From positions 62,001-126,000 of the forward strand of contig DF236954.1 of assembly GCA_000708835.1 (NCBI GenBank): 64,000 nucleotides of DNA, written 5' to 3'. The notes beneath the pieces are model-generated. The model worked only from the letters and a program-made list of their open reading frames with translations. It was not told the origin of the DNA and ran no database searches. Below, one piece after another: positions 30,974 through 44,500 of this stretch. Source of the DNA: Klebsormidium nitens (lineage: Eukaryota; Plantae; Klebsormidiophyceae). Numbering within the stretch: position 1 is the first letter of the stretch; every line of letters starts with the position of its first letter. Made by a program: the position numbers and the translations under genes.

Positions 30974-32319
30974 TCACGAAGTGGTTCCGTTGGGGGCCGG
31001 GGTCAGCGCAGCATATTGCAGCTGCCAGTTGCTGGAACCAGAGGCTGCGCTGCCATTAACGGTTCTGTTGGTATACACCCACAAAAGCGTAGCGTACATG
31101 TTCCCTAGCTGCACAAAAAGCGGAAGCGAAGGTCAGACATCCGAAAAGAGATTCTGGGTTCGCAGAAGATGAGTGACCGTGAGACAGAAACTCTCTTTTG
31201 GGGAGAACAGAGACCGTGACAAAGCAGGGAACGACCACACTCGAAATAGAGACGTTTGATTTTCTGGCTGGGCGCCGATTCAGTTCCGGGGGCCGTAGTG
31301 CTCGACTATTGCAAAGGCGTCGAAAAACAGCCCACAAATTTAGGGGCACTCAAGAAGTCTCCCTAAGGAGCTCTGAATGGCGTCTGACAATGATACGAGA
31401 GCTCTCGGTTCGTTGAACCCGCCATGCGTATAGCATAGCTGACGTCAGCTGCCACGACAGCAGCCCCACAGACTACGCTATCGTCAAACCAGGAGCAACT
31501 CACCGCGTTTGCCGGGAACTCTTCGGTGACCAGTACGGACGTGGGGTCGACCTTGAAGAGGCTCTTCAGGACGGGGCTGGACACATTGCCCTTTACTGCG
31601 CTTAGGAAGGGCGCCAAAACGGTCACGTTGCCGTACCTGGGGAATCGGATGGGCAGCGGTGTGAATAACCGCGAGGCAAACGCCAAGAGCTCAAATACAT
31701 TAAAAGAGCCACGGCGGATGAATCGACTCAGCTCGAGGGAAGATATTAGCGAAGTGCAAGCGAAGCTTCGACGAAGCGCAAGTTGTTGACCTGAGTTCAG
31801 CATCAGGCTGCAGCAAACCCGTGTAAAGACAGACGCCCGCGGCACGAAGGTAAACGAACCAGCAGGGCTGGCGGCTTGAGTGCGCCTCTGTAACAGCTTA
31901 AGAAGCACACCGTCGGAAACGCTCAAGAGCTCTCCTTGAGGCACCTTAACCAAGCGACTAATGCTCCAACAAATCGACGGAAGTACCACGCCAGACATTA
32001 CCCAAAAAAGTCTCGTACTAAGCGCGTTCCGTACAGATGCCGAAACGCCGAAAAGTCGACCTCTCTGTGATTGCTGAGGAGTAGCAATCACAATCACAAA
32101 GGAAGATAGACGTAGCTTACCCCAAAGGTCCCGGCAAGTTCGGCGCGTACAGGATACTGGTGTTTGTCACCAGGGGGAGGACCGCTGTCAGGTTGCCTTG
32201 CTGGAGGGCGGCCACCAGGGTGGCCGTCCGGGCTAGAACGTCGCTGCTGTTTGCGGGGGCGGGGGAGGGGGCGAGCGCGGAGGTTATGACTGGGAGGGTT
32301 GGCGAAACCGTTGCTTGGA
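30974..32319 (-). CDS. Three exons encoding a Pro/Thr linker plus an NTF2/SnoaL-like domain; no start codon of their own, probably an alternative 3' end of the upstream Cys-repeat gene
   Basis: Exons 32121-32319, 31504-31636, 30974-31108 are phase-consistent. They read ...SSDVLARTATLVAALQQGNLTAVLPLVTNTSILYAPNLPGPLGYGNVTVLAPFLSAVKG...GNMYATLLWVYTNRTVNGSAASGSSNWQLQYAALTPAPNGTTS*. The acceptor at 32320 has a pyrimidine tract of about 105 nt. The fold call is pattern-based. Confidence 0.65.
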
Positions 32320-32985
32320 CTGGAGAAGCGTTGATGGAGCGGAAGGGAGATAGGTTGCGAGGGCGGAAAAGGAAGAGTTTGAAGGAGTGGATTGAGGGGA
32401 GGGAAGAAGGGGAGGGGACAGGAGAGAAGAATGCGTCAGTCTAGATAAACGGAACAATCCGAAGGGCGAAAGAAGTTGCTAGCATATGAGGGGAAGCAAT
32501 AATGTCCAAGTTCGGAGATAGAAAGAGAAGCGAAAGGGGTCAAAAAAGCGGTGAAGGTGCAACGAGAAGCGAGCCACCAAACCGTCCTATGGGGATTTGC
32601 ACAGGGAAGCATGAAACAAAAGATAATGAAGGTGGGTGCGGTGTGTGTGAATGCGAGCATGTGATGAAATTGGGGAGCGTCTTGCTATACGCAACTGCAA
32701 TCTATACAACAAATGTGTGTGGCAGAGAGCTGTGGCGCAATGGTAACGTGTCCCGTGTGCAAAGCAAGCGGCGACAGTGCGCAACGAGTGAGTGAAGAGT
32801 GCATTCAACGTGCGTGAGAAATCAAAAATAAGGAACCCGCATGCAATATTCGTGGAATCACGCAAAACAAGATTCAACTCTCTATCCATAATCTATGTAC
32901 AGTTTCTATGGACACGTAGCCAATTAACACAAGCCCCGGCGCTAGCCTAGTCGTCGAAACTTAAATCATCGAACCCGCTGCTTTT

Positions 32986-35900
32986 TTACGCAAAAACTAC
33001 AAGCGCAGAAACCGCTGCACCGAGCACAACCATAATCCCAGACACACTGCCAATCGTAGCCCCTCCAGCGGCTGCGGCGGGCGACCCCGCGCCGCTCACA
33101 CCAGAACTGCTCGTCAAAAGCACGCTCGAGTTCTGCGCCCCGGTCAGGCTAGCGAAGCCCCCGGGCACGGGTGACGTCACGACCGACGTACTTGTTGACG
33201 TCCCGGTGACGTTCCCTGGGAAGCGGACCTGGTTCCCGCAGTCCACCTCTTGGCCGTTCACCAGAAAGACGGCGTTGCAGCCGCCGCAGAGGTCGGAGAT
33301 GCAGAAGGCGGTCGGGAAGTTTTGGCACTTAAGGAACGCGCACGGGTCCGGGATGCACGGGCGACCGGTTGCTTTGGTGAAGGGCGCCGAGCCGTCGGGG
33401 CAGGGACAGCTGGCGGTGACCTCCCAACCCACGTAGTCGTTTGGTAGGCCCACCTGAGACAGGGACAAGATGGTGAGGTTTTTTGAACGCTCTTTCACGG
33501 TATCTAGTTACTGAAGGAGCGAGCAGCTTTTTGAACGCCCGTCTTCGGTACCTACTTCCTTTGGACAGGAGCAACGGCGTCTCGGGCGATTCCACCGAGT
33601 CGTTAGGCAGACCCAGTCGTCAAAGACAAAGCGTGTCAGGACGAAACATGAACGGCAGAACACGAAGTGCTTTCAGATTCTGAGGTACTGCCCCGGGCAA
33701 AGTTAGAAAGGATGGTAAGCTCGCCGTGCGAGTCAGCCCTCAGAGCAAGCTGGACAGGCCAGCCGAAATAGAGAGGCTCTCCAGATCGCGCCTCCTGTTC
33801 ACGCTCCTCTTTCGATTGCAGTACAGAAGACGTTTTATGACTGGACAATCAAATAGTAACACCTTTTAATGATGATCGTAAGAGCTCGAGTCCCCGCTCA
33901 CATTGAGGTTGTACTTGGCCTTGCAGCCATCGCACGCGTCCGCCACACACTGCGCCGTTGGGTAGCGTCCGCACAGCGGCTGTGAGCAGACGGAGGCGTT
34001 GCAGGGGCTTGCTGGGGGGGTTACGGGAGGGGCTTGGCCGTTGGGGCACGTCTGGCCCGCAGCGAACGGGTTCACGACGGCGGGCTTTGGAGGAGGGGCG
34101 TATGAGGCTGCAAAAAGGAAAAGGTGGTTAGCAAGACTGCCTTGCAAGCTGTTCTGACTAATCTACAACACACGAAGATTTTTGAAAGCCAAGAAAAAGG
34201 AAAGCGAAGGAAGTGAGGGTGGTCTCGGAGGGGCGGCTTACGAGGCTGAAAAAAGGAAGGGCGGTGAAAGTTGACTAGGTTATGATGAAATCCGAAGCAC
34301 CAAATGACAAGGGGCAAGGTTTCACGGGGCTTTTCTATGGGCAGGCGATGTTGTGGAAGGGACTCGCTGTCGAGTCGCTGCCGAGCTAAAGGGCGTCTTG
34401 CGAGAAAGTCGTTACCAGCATGCGGGACAGAAGTGCAGTTCATAGCCAAAAGATGATCAACAGTCCACGTGCCGGAAAAACCCCACAGTTCACCTCATCT
34501 CGACAGACCACTATCCAACGGCGAAGTGCAACAGGATTGTATACAGAAACAACAATTGTCAGCTGCATTCTTTCCTCGGTTCAATCTTAGGCTTTGTAAG
34601 GGCGACTTCATTGTAAACCCTTGAGAGCTGTACGATGGCTAATAAGAAGTTTCCCTCCATGCCATGAGGGCGTGGTTGCCAGCAATCCATCAATTTCCAC
34701 TGGGTCCGTGATTGAGACTCCAACCCAAGGCGCTTACTCGTCCCGCTCGTCTGCTTCCCGCTCTTCGGCAGGCTCGCTGCGCCCAACGAAGCCGGGATCA
34801 CTTGCGCGGCAACGGTAGCGACCGGCACCGTTGCGTTTGCTCCCGGGAACTTTGTCTGCACGCCGCAGTCGACCTCCGTCCCGTTGACCATGAAGACGGC
34901 GTTGCAGCCGTAACACGTGTCAACCAGGCAATAGGCGTTGGGAAAGGCGGGGCACGTGAGGAGGGAGCAAGGGGAGGGGGAGCAAGTTTGCGGCAGGCTG
35001 CCGTCGGGGCAGGTGCAGTTAACGCCCCAGCCAAACAGGTCGCCGGGAACGCCGACCTGGGGGGTGGTGAATGCGCGGGTGTGAATAAACGGGGAACTCC
35101 GGAATTGGCGGACTGCTTTAAGAAAGCGTGACTCTCTATGTTGGAACCTTACCCCCAACGTCAGCTTCAGCTGCTGTGGGGCCGTTTATGTAATTTCGTT
35201 AGCCGCCGTGAAGGAGCGTTTTGATTGGCTTCACATCACCGAAGTGGGACGTGCCTTAGACGAATCCTCGACGAAGCAAACACATTACCTTATCCACAAA
35301 GTCGCTCGAGATGTTGTTATCGACCCAAGTACACACTGAGCATAGCTTTTTGAAAGTTGTGCCATGATGATCGCACAAATCAGAAATCCGATCTGTCTGT
35401 CAAACGTACAGCATTGACAAGACACCACATCAGAGGATTGAGTCGACCCGCATTGAGAATTCGTTTCAGGGGAACTAACCTGCTCGTTGTAGTTTGGCAG
35501 GCACTTGTCGCACTGGTCAGCCACACACTGAGACCCAGGGTACCGAGGACACGATGACCGGGCACAGTCGAGCTCCGTGCACGCCCGGGGGGCACTTCCG
35601 TCAGGGCAACTCTGGCCCCCACTGACAAAGTTGACGGCCGGCTCGCTAAAGACAGGGGAAGGGGGGATCTTTGCTCCTGCAATTGAGGGGAAAGACTTGA
35701 TGAATAACCCGGATTGTGTTGACAAAATGGCAGGCCCCGAACTTTGTGATCAGGAGGTTTGCAGGATTCCGAATACTGCTTGAAAGGTCGGCTGACGGCC
35801 GGGCTCCATTGAGCAGCAACAGCGAGTCTTCTGATCTTTAGCTGTGACTACTTTCAGATAATGACGGTGAAAAACAACGTAGAGTCAAGTCAGCATAAGT

Positions 35901-37761
35901 TAGACAGTCCTTTAACGTTGGGCTCTATGCTCCCAATCTACTCGTAAACCTACTCGTAAAGCCCTCACAAAGAACGACATGTTTGTCATGTTTCGTCCTC
36001 ATTCCAAATTCCAGTCGAAGCTGGTTGTGTGAAAATATACGCCAGAAGAAGCTCACCAGCCAGGGGAATAGGAGCAGGGGCTGAGAGAGGGTATGCAACG
36101 TTGCACTGGTTGAAGTAATTTTGGAAGCCCTGGCGCAGCGACGGGCTCGCAAAGATGTCCAAAACCTCCTTCAGCTGGTATGTGCATTGCACATCCAGGC
36201 TCCGGATCGCAGCACAGGTCGGGACGCCCTTCACTGCGTCGCTGAAGAGGTTCTTCTGCAAAGTGGAGTTGAAAGATAGTTCTTAGACATTCTTCGATGG
36301 ACTGGTCCTGCTGCTTAAAAGGTCAATTGCACGTTGATTCAATGGCAGTGCCTCGAGCGCAGAAGTGAGGACTGAGGCATTACAGAACGACACTGACAAG
36401 GTGCACATCAGAACCGCTTCTTGAAGTTGGATCAGAGCGCACAACAGACGGAGTATTTGGACTTCTGAGACAACATTTCTAAGCCCCCAGAGAATCTTTG
36501 AGCAAATCTTGTACTCAAATTGAACCACTTGCAATGTTATGCAAACCGGTCCTGCTCGGATTTAGAGGTCAAAGTCCCATGAGCACCTTCTTACTACAAG
36601 CTTCTACCATATACGATTGATAGCCTAGGAGCTGGAAGCACAAACCTATGATGGCAGATCCCCCTCAAGTTGCGTGTAATCTTCCCCCCACACCTTGCAT
36701 ATCGCAAGGCAACCTGGCCTACAATAGAGCAGTCCTGTCGTATATTGTAATTTACTATGTTCAAAGGGCCTTCCAGGGAGGTCAGGAAATGTGCTGAACT
36801 TACGAAGCAGTAGCTGCCATCAGCGGCAGTGGTACACCAGTATGCCGCAATCACGTCGAGGTCCGTATCCACCGGAGCTGCACACCTCTTCCCAAAGTTT
36901 GTGGCATAGAAGGCCTTCTCTTGCCAGTCCACAACTCCTTGGTGCACAGAACTGTAGCACACAGAGAATTGATGGGCTTAATAACCAACCACTGTCATTT
37001 CAAACTTTCCAAGCATGGTTCAGACAGAATATATTGGTCCTTGGGGCGCTGCCTTGGAACACTACCTCAATGTGGTTGACTTCCACAGACTACTCATTTG
37101 TGTCTTCATTATTAGGTAGTCTTTCAACCAGTGCGGTGCCCTAGATCTACAATTGTCCAACACCTGTCCTCTATTGATCTTGACCAACAAATCTGAGCAA
37201 GCAGGCAAACCAGCAGTTCTAAGCAGTCAGACAAAGGCAAATTAGTCATTTGTGTAGCTATGTCTATACACCGAAACTCCAACTACATATAAGCAGGCAA
37301 GTGTGTAAAGTGCCAGACAACCTGTCGCAGACTTTTGCAATTGCTTGTTTCAAAGAAGCAATGCAAACACTCATTAACAGACTGTCTCTCAAAACCACTA
37401 AAGACATAAGCTTTCTTTGCAGTTCCACTTGTTCAGGCAAGTCAGCAATAAGGGGTCAACTTGAACAAGAGCTGAAACAGCGAAACAGCCCTCACCAGTA
37501 CCAAGCACAGAAGTTGCCAAACTCCGCCTTAGTGCTCGTGAAATTCGCAAAGTCGAAGTCTGCAAAGCCACCACATGCGGGAAGCGAATGGAGTGCCGTG
37601 GCTTGGTTCTGCAACCGGATGGTTTCACAGTGCAAGGCCTGCTGCTGCTTGATGAGCTGCTGCTGTTGAAACTGCTGCTGAGGTGAGAGGTTTGCAGTTG
37701 CGCAGGCGAACAATGCTGCTAGCCAAAAGGCCTGCAGCAAAACTCCCCGCCCTGGAGCCAT
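32986..37761 (-). CDS. Secreted/cell-surface Cys-rich protein (about 600 aa): signal peptide, 10-Cys N-domain, four 8-Cys repeats, Ser/Thr/Gly spacer and a hydrophobic GPI-like C-terminus
   Basis: Exons 37496-37761, 36804-36951, 36057-36255, 35480-35676, 34738-35056, 33902-34107, 32986-33453 (1803 nt, phases match). Signal peptide MAPGRGVLLQAFWLAALFACATA. Repeat consensus CP(D/N)G-x5-9-C-x4-C-x4-C-x7-C-x4-C-x2-C-xn-C. Tail GIMVVLGAAVSALVVFA*. Confidence 0.8.
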
Positions 37762-38532: not shown

Positions 38533-41500
38533 ATGGCAGACTTGGTGCAATGTCAAGGGTTCTTCGACATCAGAAAGGTCTCTGATTCGAAAGCTCTGAG
38601 AGCATCAAGGGCTGCAACAGCGACACCCCAACTGGTGTTGCGCAACGGTATCCTTAGTGGTACATTCAGAAGCGCTGGAAAAAGTTGGAGCTCAGCGAGA
38701 GCGCAGTCTGCGGCAGCTGGGTGGCAAGGTGGCAGTCAGTGGCCCCTTCGATGGCCGGTGGTTAGGAACCGCGCTTCATCTTTAGGCAACCACAGCTCAC
38801 GGCAAGCGGAGCAAACTCGGTCAGGAAGGCCTCGAAGGTGCAGGTCTCTGAAGAGTGCCACTGCAATACAACTAGAGCGAGAGAAACTGCAGAGCGAGCT
38901 TGGTGCGCCCTTCTGGCCCCATGATCGGTTGGAAATGTCCCGAGCACCAAAATGTGGGGCCATGTCTTTATGTGAGGCAAGGTTTGTGGAAGAGCGGAGG
39001 GGGAGGCGAAAGTTGCGGAGAAAGAATGTTGTAGCAACCCTTGATGCCCTCAAGACCAGTGGCTCTTCGGCGCGGCTTGGAAGAACGCAGCGAGAAGCTT
39101 TAGTTAGTGCCACCAGTGTACCTGGTGTCGAAGTTGAAGGCCAGAGTGTGGCCCACTCACATGCTCAGTCCATTGACACCGCCCATGAGCCCTCCACATC
39201 ACAGCCTGTACAGTTGGATACATTTGATGAGTCTTCCAGTAGCACCAGTTTGAATGCAGGACTTTCGAGCAGCGAAGCAGAACACTTGGCGGAAACCTTA
39301 GTGGAATCTTTAGCGGAGTCAAACGAGGCGGCGATTGGAGTACTTGGAGGTTCAGCCGAGACTGCCGACGAAAGTAGTGGTGTGAACAGGGGCGATTCCT
39401 GTTCCACCAGTCTGTCGAAGCACCGCGAGAAGTACTGGAAGGGGCTTATTGACACTGAGAACTGGGAGGCACTGCACTTGGATCGTGCAGGATCCGTCAC
39501 GGATTCGCACGTCTTGCGGCGGAAGGGGCACTTGAAGGTGAGTCAGCAAAAGACAGACTGATGTTGACGGTATGAACCAGGACCCACGTCAGCTTATAGA
39601 TTGCAAAAGATATTATGCTTGCAAATTGCGGCAGAAAGGTCACTGTGAAGAGTCCGCAAACTTGCGCTCAAGGGTATCAGCGGGCAATGTTGGAAGTGTG
39701 ATGGAAAGGGTATGAGAAAATATGAAGTACGCGACTGCGTCGAATCACGTAAGCCGCTACGCAACGAGCCGCTCAGAAGATTTGAAAACAGGAGAGCTCT
39801 GCGCTTGTGACTCTATGTTATCGGACCGAGTGGTGAAGAGAAGAGAGGGAAAGGTGGCATATTTTTTGTGGGGATCTTCTTGGTCTTCAGACTGTGGGCT
39901 ACTTCTAGTTAGACATGGTCTCCAACAAAAGGTTCTGCGAGCGGTTGGCTCTATTCCACCGTTTGGAAGGACTCCGTATGCATCTCGCTGATGCAATTAT
40001 TCATCCCAATTGAGATGCGAATCTTCTTTGGGGAGCGAAGCGGGGTCTGTGCATCACAGCATGGCATTAACTAGAGGCGAGACAAATGCTGGCCACTTTT
40101 CTGGCCTTGTTTCAGGAACAAGATGGCCTGATCGACTTCATCATCAGTATGCACCAGATGCTGTCCCCATATGAGGTAAGAAAGGCGCTGATGCCATCAC
40201 CCTCCTTCCGTACGATTCTGTTCCATTATTCCAACCCGTCCAAATGAGGACGCTTGCAATTGGAATTGATCAGAACGGCAGGAACAGGACGCAGGCCAAT
40301 ACCTGACTGCCAAGTCACTACTCCGCCCGAAAGGAATCACTTACGGACACTGTAATCGTGAAGCCTAATACAACACTCGTAGCAGGGTCCAACTCAATCC
40401 CCACGAAAAGGTAATTCTCGCCTTTCATTCGCAAGCCTGGAACCAGCAACGGCCACTGTCTTCTGCCGGCAGTCTGATTATTGCCTTGAACGTCGTCCCC
40501 TCTTTATATCCGCCGAGTTTGTTCATCTCCTACATTTTGAAACGAAGGAGGTGGGGGTTCGTTTTGCCGAACGCTGACAACATGCTTCCTACTTCCCATG
40601 CCTGACCATCACGCACTTGCAATTTCAGGTTGCACCATCAGGCAGGAGCTGGCTTTTGAAACGCAACAAGAAAGGGATAACGGCAATGGGAAGACGCGCA
40701 TAAGAAGTCGGCGAGGCGGCGAGACTTGAGCCATCACTGAGACCCTATCAATATTGGGGACTGAATCTTGTCACGCACAAGGAGGCAAAGTGGCAAGATG
40801 TGATTATCAGCGAGAGCTTTGAATTCAGGGACTCGAATCTGACATCTCCGAAACTCTGCAGGTAATGGAGAAGGTGGAGTAGTGGGTGTTGGAGCATCGA
40901 CAGGACCACAAGCGGAGCACGCTGAAGCGGCTGGTGCCCTCCGTCGGCAAGTTCTACACGCGCCTAAAACTGGTCGACGCACTCAAGGTGAGACTTTGGG
41001 GGTTGTGCGTTGAGATGGATACCAAGGAACGCCTTTTCAAGCTGACAAGGGATAGTATATCTGCAAGTGTGGTTGGTTGATCCGATGGTACTTTCAGACC
41101 ACGGGGGTTGACATTAGCGTTATGTTGCAGAAACTCTTAGAGCGTCGTTACCACTGCCGCTGCTGACTTCCGTGGAGAAGCACATCTGCCTTACACGCAG
41201 GCCAAGAGCTTCTTGCGTTATTTTTCGTAGCGATTCTTTCGATTTCCGAGAGTCCCCGTCTGAATGCGCAGTTTCGCATTCAGTCCGTCCTGCTTACCTT
41301 TCAGACTGTCCAGTTGATTTCCGCGGCTACAAATGAACCGGCAATTATCTCAAGCCGTTACTTCCTCAAACTCCCAACTTTCTCAAGCATCGGAAGATCA
41401 GAAACTGTCAACGACATTACTCTCACCAAAATCAACATGAGTGCCCTCAGCACCACCGTTCAGCAGCGACATCTCCAACAAAAGCAGAGTTCGAAACAGA

Positions 41501-44500
41501 GGGGACGCCACTGTTCTTTGCAGGAGTTTGACGAAAATTTTCCGTTTCACGTCGCCGCTACGTTCCGGCGAACATTTTTGGTAGCTGAAGAGTTCAACTC
41601 CTAAGACGAGTGCCGTCACTATCATTCAGCGTCGAAGCTTTCGACCACGATCCAATCTTTCAAGTTTTTCATCGAATCGAATAGAATGAAGTCGAAAGAC
41701 GATACGCCCTTCGTTTCTGCGCGAATACGACGAGTCTGCCTCCTTCTTGCGCCGCCGCTACGTCCCGCCCAACTTCTTTGATTACTGATGGACAATCCTC
41801 CATGAGTTTTCTCACCACCATTCAGTAGCGTCTGTTTTGTTTCCCAGCATTTCGATAAATAACGCTGACTCTCTTTGCAGGAGGACGACAAATTCGCCTC
41901 CTTCTTGCGCCGCCGCTATGTCCCGCCGACACTTATCAATATTCGAGACGGTCCTCATGTGGCTATGAGCACCCAACACCACCTCTACGATTGCATCTTT
42001 GGAAGCAATCGAGTGAGAATTAAATTCCAGTCATCGAACGCCCTTTTCTGTTGCAGGAGTACGACGAGTTCGCCTCCCTCTCGCGCCGCCGCTACGTCCC
42101 CCCCAACTTCGCGGAGATCCGGCACATCCTCAACATCGCGCAGCTGCACGCGTCCGCCGAAGAGCTCGCACTCATCACGTTCGATGCGGACGGGACGTTG
42201 TACGCGGACGGACACCACATGAAGGACGACAACAAGATGATTGGGCACATAGTCGCGCTCATGAAGCGGGGAATCAGCGTTGCAATCGTGACTGCGGCAG
42301 GTATGCGGCAAGAAGTGTGTGTCCTTATTGTGGGTTTCTGGTGAGCAGCTCGGTTTCGATGAACGGTGCGACTCCTTTTTCCCTAGCGTGAAGACGACAG
42401 TAAACGATTTGGGCATTTGGTTACGGACTCGTAATAAACTTGACCAGCTTTGCACTGTTGCTGCGGCAGATGGGCGACGGGGCCTTGCCTTTCTGGTCAA
42501 TGATGACTTTCACAAACGTTTTGATTTTTGTTTTGGCTACTCAAGTAAGCTCTTCGATTCGTCTTCGAGAATTGTTTGCAAAGAGCTTAACACCATACGG
42601 TGCCTTTCCTTTGCTCGTGGCTTGCTCAGTCCTTTTCTTGTCCACACGTGGCCGTCCTTACGGAAGTAGCGCACCTTTCGAGGTCAGAACATGTACAGCT
42701 GTCCGTCTGCACGTGCTTGCAAAGCGGTGAAGACCAACCAGCGGACCCACTGCCTTGCAACACCAGGGAAGGCTCTTGAGTTTTCTCTTTGGTGGGTCTG
42801 ATTCCGAGCTTCTTTCTGTCCCCCAACAGGTTACCCGGGTGAGGCCGCCCGCTTCGAGGGGCGCTTGGCGGGACTTCTGGCGGCGTTCGAAGCGCTCCAG
42901 CTCCCCCCCGCAACGACGAACCTGTTCCACGTGATGGGGGGCGAGTGCAACTACCTGCTGAAAGTGAACGACCGGTATCGGCTGGAGTTCGTGGACGATT
43001 CGCTGTGGAAGCTGGAGAGTATGCGGGAGTGGGGGGCGGACGACGTGGAGCGATTGCTGGACGACGCCGAGGTGAGGAGTGTACTTCTGGGTTCGAACAC
43101 GGGTTTAGAGTTCGAGTTAGCTTTTACCAGGTCTTTTGGTTATGCACTCGTCGAGCATGTTGGACTAGGGGGACGGGGACGTGGAACGGTCGCTGGACGA
43201 CGCCATTGGTAGGACAGTCTTAACAAGCCAACTCTCATCAAACGCCGACTCCTGACACCAAAGCCTAACCCGAGAACAATAAATCGAAAAACCGCTTGGA
43301 TAACACCCTGGTTGTTCACCTTCTCAGGCAATTCTGCGGTGCCTCTGCGCGGTTGCGCGTGCCGTCGGCAAGGAGCGTACGGTGGGCATCAGTGGTACCA
43401 CCGTACTGCCTGAAAGAAAGATTTCAAATTTGAGCCCTTGGATGTCGATATTCCAAGATTCTTGTTCTCCCAGGCGATTCTGCGGTCGGCCTCCGCGCGG
43501 CTGCGCGTGCCGGTTGCGGTGATCCGCAAAGAGCGCGCGGTGGGCATTTGCCCGGTACAGCCCACCATCTACGAGGTGCTCGAGGAGATTGCGCTGACAG
43601 TGCAAGCGCAGCTGGTGGATTCCAAACTGCCCTTCTGCGCTTTCAACGGGGGAAAGGACGTGTTTGTCGACGTAGGTAAGACCCCCAGAAACGCCTCCTG
43701 CAGGCAGACCATACCGTTCCACATGCAGGTTTGGTATCACGCCGAACGTAAGGCGCGCAGTCTCCTCATGCAGATTGCTTGCGCCGAAGTCTTCTGTTCT
43801 CCTACTCTGCTGTCCAGTGCTTGGTTTCAATTTGTTCGTTTCTGGTTCCTCGCTCTTTGGTTTTGCTGTTGACGAAAGTGATCTGGCGAATTCCTGCCTT
43901 TTGGTGCATGTAACGGGGTAGATAGGAATTGGACCTAATCACTTGTCCTCCAGGGTGTTTGTCAGAGTGCACTGAATGTTCCAACCCCCGTCCTCGTACT
44001 AAAAACAGCGTCTGTCAATCGTTCTCTCATCAACTGCGCTAATGACAACCAATGTAAGTCTTTTAATCACATGTGTTGTTGTTGGAAGCGGAATTAAATG
44101 AGTTCGTGACTGTGCACAGGTAACAAGAGCCTGGGCATGGCTGCACTACTACAGTATTTGCGGAAACGGCCCGAGGAGACCCTCCATGTGGGCGACCGGT
44201 TCACGGTGACCGGTAACGACGGGGCCACCCGCAGCCGGTGCTCCATCCTGTAAGCTTTACTGCGACACCTTGTCAGTCTGATCTCTTTCTTTTTTAGTCT
44301 TTCGGGATATTTCTCGGATGTCCTGGGACTTTTGGGCATGGCGGTCGCTTCAGAAAATATTACACCTTTTCAGCAATATTAAGCTGTCCTATGGCTGCTA
44401 AGATTCGCGCTCGCCTCATTTCCGTCTTCGTCGTTCTTCATATCTCTTTCTGAGGATCTAGGGCTGTTGAGATTCCTAGCAGATTCGACGCCGCCTTGCC

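Follow-up and report, generated by a model that had tools for sequence, protein, structure and literature searches.

We examined a 64,000-nucleotide (nt) stretch of the genome of the streptophyte alga Klebsormidium nitens (contig DF236954.1, positions 62,001 to 126,000 of the forward strand; the window), which is eukaryotic in character, intron-rich and ~53% G+C. Within it lies one minus-strand gene. It opens with an ATG and signal peptide (37761); three exons for an N-terminal Cys domain come first, then four modules of eight cysteines each (8-Cys modules, A1-B1-A2-B2) and finally its C-terminal exons, N1 to N3. We demonstrate the gene structure, a fused mRNA from a relative, and selection on both alternative ends of the gene. 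From the sequence, B2 is likely to be a composite terminal exon: within one gene, B2 would either end in a glycosylphosphatidylinositol (GPI)-type tail or be spliced to N1-N3. The features are listed below, with an oblique stroke marking each exon boundary. Exons 1 to 3, A1, B1 and A2 are collinear with the 684-amino-acid (aa) orthologue P0151, exon 1 with its residues 1-88.

37496-37761, minus strand: exon 1, as read from the sequence; ATG at 37761-37759, signal peptide and beginning of the N-terminal Cys domain; phase 2 out
36804-36951, minus strand: exon 2; N-terminal Cys domain, without a Pfam match
36057-36255, minus strand: exon 3; N-terminal Cys domain; phase 1 out
35480-35676, minus strand: exon A1; first 8-Cys module
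34738-35056, minus strand: exon B1; second 8-Cys module and linker; phase-1 donor CGA/GTAAGC
33902-34107, minus strand: exon A2; third 8-Cys module
33192-33453, minus strand: head of exon B2; fourth 8-Cys module, common to both predicted isoforms
32986-33453, minus strand: whole exon B2, read through; Cys module and tail
33184-33195, minus strand: 5' splice site inside the exon, ACAA/GTACGTCG; exon end 33192, GT at 33191-33190, phase 1
32986-33191, minus strand: read-through part of B2; Ser/Gly stalk, small-residue region and 16-residue hydrophobic GPI-type tail; stop at 32986-32988
32750-32985, minus strand: putative 3' untranslated region (UTR) and polyadenylation (poly(A)) region of the anchored isoform; bounds approximate
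32320-32440, minus strand: branch-point-like CTGAC (at -120), 119-nt AG-free pyrimidine tract and acceptor AG at 32321-32320
32121-32319, minus strand: exon N1; phase 1 in, phase 2 out; Pro/Ser linker and predicted first helices of the C-terminal domain
31504-31636, minus strand: exon N2; C-terminal domain
30974-31108, minus strand: exon N3; C-terminal domain, stop at 30974-30976

An earlier reading of the same DNA from its letters alone (the sequence-only reading) had proposed three in-phase exons leading to the stop at 30974, and N1, N2 and N3 are indeed all open and in phase; the other sequence features that it listed likewise lie at the coordinates it gave. The window sequence was searched exon by exon, whilst the spliced orthologues P0005 and P0151 were used for the joined protein.

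A search with exon B2 returned three close relatives: P0002 (178 aa, 76% identical), which covers B2 including the tail; P0006 (90 aa), which covers the tail; and P0005 (238 aa), which has the B2 head and then 146 more residues. In P0005, residues 1-87 match the B2 head and are followed by one junction codon and then by the orthologues of N1, N2 and N3. P0151, which falls in the same 90%-identity cluster as P0005, runs from the signal peptide through every exon into the same C-terminal domain. P0005 is encoded by contig L001 (993 nt) and full-length P0151 by contig L005 (2640 nt, of which 265 nt precede and 320 nt follow the coding sequence (CDS)). The two contigs derive from two different Joint Genome Institute (JGI) samples and both are intronless. 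Because all nine introns are missing, we take L001 and L005 to be spliced mRNA, an assignment made from the contigs themselves and not from sample metadata. The nucleotide identity of this relative to the window is about 80%.

When L001 was compared with the window using blastn, the matching blocks stopped exactly at 33192 and resumed in N1, N2 and N3, with the A2/B2 junction also covered. L001 and L005 both match the window exon by exon, breaking at 33192 to 32319. On the genomic contigs L006 (82 kb) and L007 (77 kb), which come from close relatives, L005 aligned as ten blocks; the ends of blocks 1 and 2 overlap, and the other eight ends read as GT...AG. At the junction in question the L006 and L007 genomic sequence reads CCACAA/gtacgtcg, joined to cag/CCCAAG. 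In the relative, the internal donor inside a coding exon is used in mRNA, and K. nitens presumably splices B2 to N1 likewise.

The sequence-only reading had named this donor (ACAA/GTACGT, phase 1, exon end 33192), which is present as described, and had predicted the junction 33192 to 32319 from raw DNA; the latter has been confirmed to the base by the independent spliced RNA of the relative. For the other junction that it had offered, 34738 to 32319, we found no evidence, as both cDNAs (complementary DNA; L001 and L005) use 33192. It had also placed the B2 donor at roughly the same position as the B1 donor at 34738; the two share phase 1, and the likeness in position is loose, with the B1 donor 19 codons further from its module. 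In a tblastn search with B2 residues 1-109, the opening ~20 residues of the read-through tail (33191-33125) aligned with the linker at the end of B1 (34830-34745), and the internal donor of B2 thus sits in what is ordinary linker in B1. The GPI-type tail may have grown out of a B1-like linker.

The distance of ~666 nt between the tail stop and N1, together with a CT-rich tract that could pass for a promoter or a 5' UTR pyrimidine patch, might instead suggest two adjacent genes, one for a GPI-anchored Cys-repeat protein and one for a separate NTF2-like protein, with the fused contigs being read-through chimeras. We regard this as extremely unlikely. L005 holds the full 684-aa fused CDS with both 5' and 3' UTR sequence. 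There is no ATG in N1, and upstream of it the frame closes before any start codon is reached. Listing every ATG against every phase-1 GT between 32320 and 33000 gave no ATG-started open reading frame (ORF) with a credible phase-1 donor; the view of the sequence-only reading that these exons have no start of their own held. The encoded domain keeps seven sequons, yet the N exons have neither a start codon nor a signal peptide of their own. Finally, no block of the 666-nt gap is conserved between clades save the branch-point and tract region, which is the best-conserved block of the gap.

That region sets the N1 acceptor apart from the others in the gene. It is preceded by a 119-nt AG-free stretch of 82% pyrimidine, with CTGAC at -120, compared with 17-51 nt at the other eight acceptors; the sequence-only reading had recognised the long tract and estimated it at ~105 nt. 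Four lineages are alike in this respect, with AG-free stretches of 119-149 nt, ~80% pyrimidine and CTGAC at -120 to -137. A distant branch point combined with a long pyrimidine tract is an acceptor type favoured in regulated splicing, and we infer regulation through these two elements; the long AG-free tract and the conserved distant branch-point motif make such regulation directly testable. Elsewhere in the gap, the first ~240 nt past the tail stop are ~60-70% identical to L004, the genomic contig of the closest relative of the window sequence, and the mid-gap is 30-55% identical, whilst the 3' UTR after N3 is 68% identical between the window and L004. The UTR-like conservation past the tail stop fits a reading in which the RNA would be polyadenylated within the intron.

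The read-through tail of B2 comprises 68 codons. A Ser/Gly/Ala run is followed by a spacer of ~8 residues and a 16-residue hydrophobic end directly before the stop, which agrees with the Ser/Gly spacer and hydrophobic GPI-type tail noted in the sequence-only reading. The layout of a GPI signal (small-residue region, polar spacer, hydrophobic end and no cytosolic residues) was found by eye in five orthologues. The tail is predicted to be a GPI-attachment-type signal and would be GPI-processed.

To assess conservation from B2 through N1 we used five genomic sources: the window, L004, L006, L007 and L002. The twelve bases at the donor, ACAAGTACGTCG, are identical in all five copies, where the inter-clade synonymous divergence is ~1, and the donor plus the following eight bases are likewise invariant. 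The tail ORF is open in five of five copies; the copies differ by three indels of 3 nt each and share the position of the stop. Clade-to-clade alignment breaks down immediately past that stop. The ratio of non-synonymous to synonymous divergence (dN/dS) in the tail is 0.21-0.51 (Fisher test of synonymous versus non-synonymous changes, p 1e-5 to 1e-6 for the deep pairs and 8e-5 for the close pair), compared with 0.06-0.21 in the B2 head (p 3e-16) and 0.05-0.36 in N1-N3 (p 2e-13, where selection was computed per exon and the counts alone were summed). Because the donor, tail ORF, acceptor tract and three exons are conserved in four or five genomic orthologues, these features are beyond chance.

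A GPI tail that is well formed and conserved could also mean that the gene mainly makes the anchored form, the fused mRNA being infrequent splicing noise picked up by chance in assembly. This is very unlikely, since N1-N3 are themselves under purifying selection, with every splice site conserved; the donor does not vary, nor do the next eight bases, and two independent samples each yielded the fused form on assembly. Conversely, the fused form might be the sole functional product, with a constitutive donor and the tail ORF an unmade by-product: the spliced contigs recovered, from two samples, were all fused, and anchored mRNA was not found. We consider this unlikely, because an intron that is never translated would not be expected to preserve 68 open codons, to take indels of 3 nt only, to hold its stop in place and its end hydrophobic, and to show a dN/dS <1 across lineages at a synonymous divergence (dS) of ~1; the real introns of the gene fail to align between the two clades.

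Two alternative C-termini are thus the best reading, because the tail, although within a spliced-out intron, is still under purifying selection. Across B2, L002 and the cDNA share 99.6% identity, which places L002 in that species or in one barely distinct from it; as the tail of L002 is intact, the maker of the fused mRNA also keeps the anchor signal. The proposal in the sequence-only reading of alternative ends, one anchored and one secreted, is supported by the fused mRNA of the relative and by selection on the tail in the five genomic copies.

Set against a composite exon with two outcomes is a series of negative results. Spliced contigs that end in the GPI tail were absent both from a metagenome scan for the A2/B2 junction, which gave L005 alone, and from a word search with B2, which gave just the three known relatives; all of the tail-bearing contigs are genomic or unspliced. 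The Logan contigs that carry the tail showed no poly(A) at their ends, and the poly(A) site could not be placed. Moreover, word searches in the 36-114, 134-427 and 85-271 aa ranges found no protein of the window genome, those with N1 (36-114 aa range) and with N2 in its stop-free ORF (134-427 aa range) being blank. We infer the anchored half of the switch because the tail is under selection, its mRNA not having been seen; presumably this mRNA is made through an intronic poly(A) site.

In the mechanism that we propose for the composite exon, the gene product would be a secreted, N-glycosylated, Cys-rich protein whose C-terminus is decided at B2. Where the donor at 33192 is used, the tail and the 666-nt gap would be removed and N1-N2-N3 added, giving a soluble form (684 aa in the relative) in which a Pro/Ser linker leads into a heavily glycosylated, probably NTF2-like domain. 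Where splicing passes over the donor, with cleavage and polyadenylation of the RNA within ~660 nt downstream, 68 more codons would be translated, adding the Ser/Gly stalk and the GPI-type signal to give an anchored form. Skipping of the donor needs cleavage and polyadenylation in the gap, because the stop at 32986 would otherwise precede two exon junctions. A fuller interpretation, on which our judgement is evenly balanced, is that, in this alga and its relatives, a switch like that of the immunoglobulin mu heavy chain toggles a surface, protease-inhibitor-like Cys-repeat protein between a GPI-anchored state and a state released with a glycosylated NTF2-like ligand-binding or enzymatic domain, the tract and distant branch point being the regulatory handle. 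The two isoforms probably act differently at the cell surface or wall, because the released form gains a whole domain.

The C-terminal domain spans ~125 aa behind the Pro/Ser linker. Seven N-x-S/T sequons are conserved within about 130 residues, which fits a domain that the upstream signal peptide carries along the secretory pathway. In an ESM Atlas language-model search, residues 108-238 of P0005 scored 0.94 to NTF2-family, SnoaL_3 and DUF4440 clusters, on a scale where shuffled sequences score >=0.9 in 4-10% of cases. Window exon N1 alone scored 0.82, and every neighbour that carried a name belonged to the NTF2 clan. A phmmer search of the PDB gave a weak collinear match to the ketosteroid-isomerase-like 3d9r (E 0.72), whilst a PDB profile search gave no NTF2 match. 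On balance the domain probably has an NTF2 fold, an assignment for which language-model similarity is the one line of evidence. Counting against it, the domain had no significant match in Pfam, NCBIfam, the PDB or a plasmid tblastn search (Pfam and NCBIfam were blank at E <= 10, and Pfam on P0005 was blank at E <= 1). AlphaFold2, given 8-9 near-identical or partial rows in each of two runs, returned a predicted local distance difference test score (pLDDT) of 36 on P0005, from an alignment with misaligned orthologue pieces, and of 37 on the C-terminal domain alone, from a clean but shallow alignment; scores this low speak neither for nor against an NTF2 fold.

The end of N1 (32150-32120) resembles the end of N3 (31005-30977) in a Y-A..P.P.G motif, and MAFFT repeatedly put N3 pieces on N1; the N3 rows were left out of the alignment as MAFFT had placed them there. 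The likeness may be chance or a small internal echo.

Turning to the modules, A and B share the 8-Cys pattern C..C..PC..C..P.A.C..C.GC.A.F..C, and tblastn of the exons against the window found four such modules only. The same pattern defines a larger, unnamed family. With B2 as the query, phmmer found 176 library proteins at E <= 1e-3, 30 of them at E <= 1e-10, with up to 14 repeats per protein, and an alignment of 76 proteins shows the Cys columns to be invariant or almost so. The family members are mostly invertebrate secreted polyproteins, with one from the green alga Bryopsis, and they carry source labels such as 'kielin/chordin-like', 'papilin', 'hyalin-like' and 'agrin'. The companion Pfam domains in 75 of the hit proteins (P0151 being the 76th) are mainly Kunitz, Kazal, TIL, WAP, thyroglobulin-1 and pacifastin. 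The gene described here differs from these animal or Bryopsis proteins in its C-terminal domain: inhibitor-type domains are often found in them, and an NTF2-type Pfam domain was present in none of the 75 module-bearing proteins scanned. Neither a Pfam model nor a solved structure matched the 8-Cys module. By analogy with its companions, the repeats suggest an inhibitor-like or matrix role, and the module may be an undescribed protease-inhibitor-type module. Because the module is widespread in invertebrate inhibitor polyproteins, a structure or activity for it would annotate many proteins.

The immunoglobulin mu heavy chain is the classical secreted/membrane switch at a composite terminal exon, in which splicing competes with intronic polyadenylation. 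The likeness lies in a 5' splice site inside the exon that competes with read-through to a near stop and (here predicted) a poly(A) site, the choice setting whether the protein would be membrane-attached or soluble. The algal gene would differ in three ways: the polarity is reversed, with read-through giving the anchored form and splicing the soluble one; the anchor is a GPI-type signal and not a transmembrane exon; and the spliced form gains a whole extra domain.

Alternative 3' exons that give GPI-anchored versus differently ended isoforms have been described for Arabidopsis SKS3 (bioRxiv 10.1101/669507), CD59 (PMC9214515) and NCAM (PMC2290859). The alternative end of those proteins consists of a short peptide or a transmembrane segment, or is lacking altogether, whereas here it is a predicted folded domain of ~125 aa; the present case is also from a streptophyte alga, with the proposed switch conserved across lineages at dS ~1. 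For the plant lineage, chloroplast ascorbate peroxidase of spinach and tobacco is reported to undergo 3'-terminal alternative splicing that gives a soluble or a membrane-bound isoform (PMC9434269). It is a precedent for 3'-terminal processing that sets soluble versus membrane-bound fate, in a different protein, compartment and type of anchor.

The proposed domain would also have known counterparts in the NTF2-like SnoaL_3 and DUF4440 (PF13474, PF14534), whose length the ~125 aa would fit, in line with the Atlas and 3d9r matches above. The listed relatives are small bacterial proteins, whereas the domain here would be secreted, N-glycosylated and fused behind disulfide-rich modules. This kind of anchored/soluble switch is already known, and we did not find the combination of domains, or this mode of regulation with it, described in the literature outside subscription journals. 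The gene would add a conserved case of anchored versus released isoforms in the algal lineage nearest to the land plants, for which few switches of this kind are on record.

The N-terminal Cys domain (window 37761-36057) has roughly 190 aa and ten Cys, and had no match in Pfam, NCBIfam or the PDB. A Pfam scan of the ten exons one by one gave nothing meaningful, with Toxin_7 and HCMV_UL116 far under the cut-off. The N-terminal Cys domain, the 8-Cys modules and the C-terminal domain are thus all without a Pfam family or solved relative. The signal peptide that precedes them was recognised by eye as a short charged stretch, a hydrophobic core, small residues and then a polar stretch, and is kept in P0151.

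As regards the surroundings of the gene, ferroportin-like (FPN1) ORFs lie on the opposite strand downstream of N3 in the relatives, and no nucleotide match to them was found in the window. The upstream neighbour (39419-42302) is syntenic with L006 458-3099, the two sharing exon-sized nucleotide blocks.

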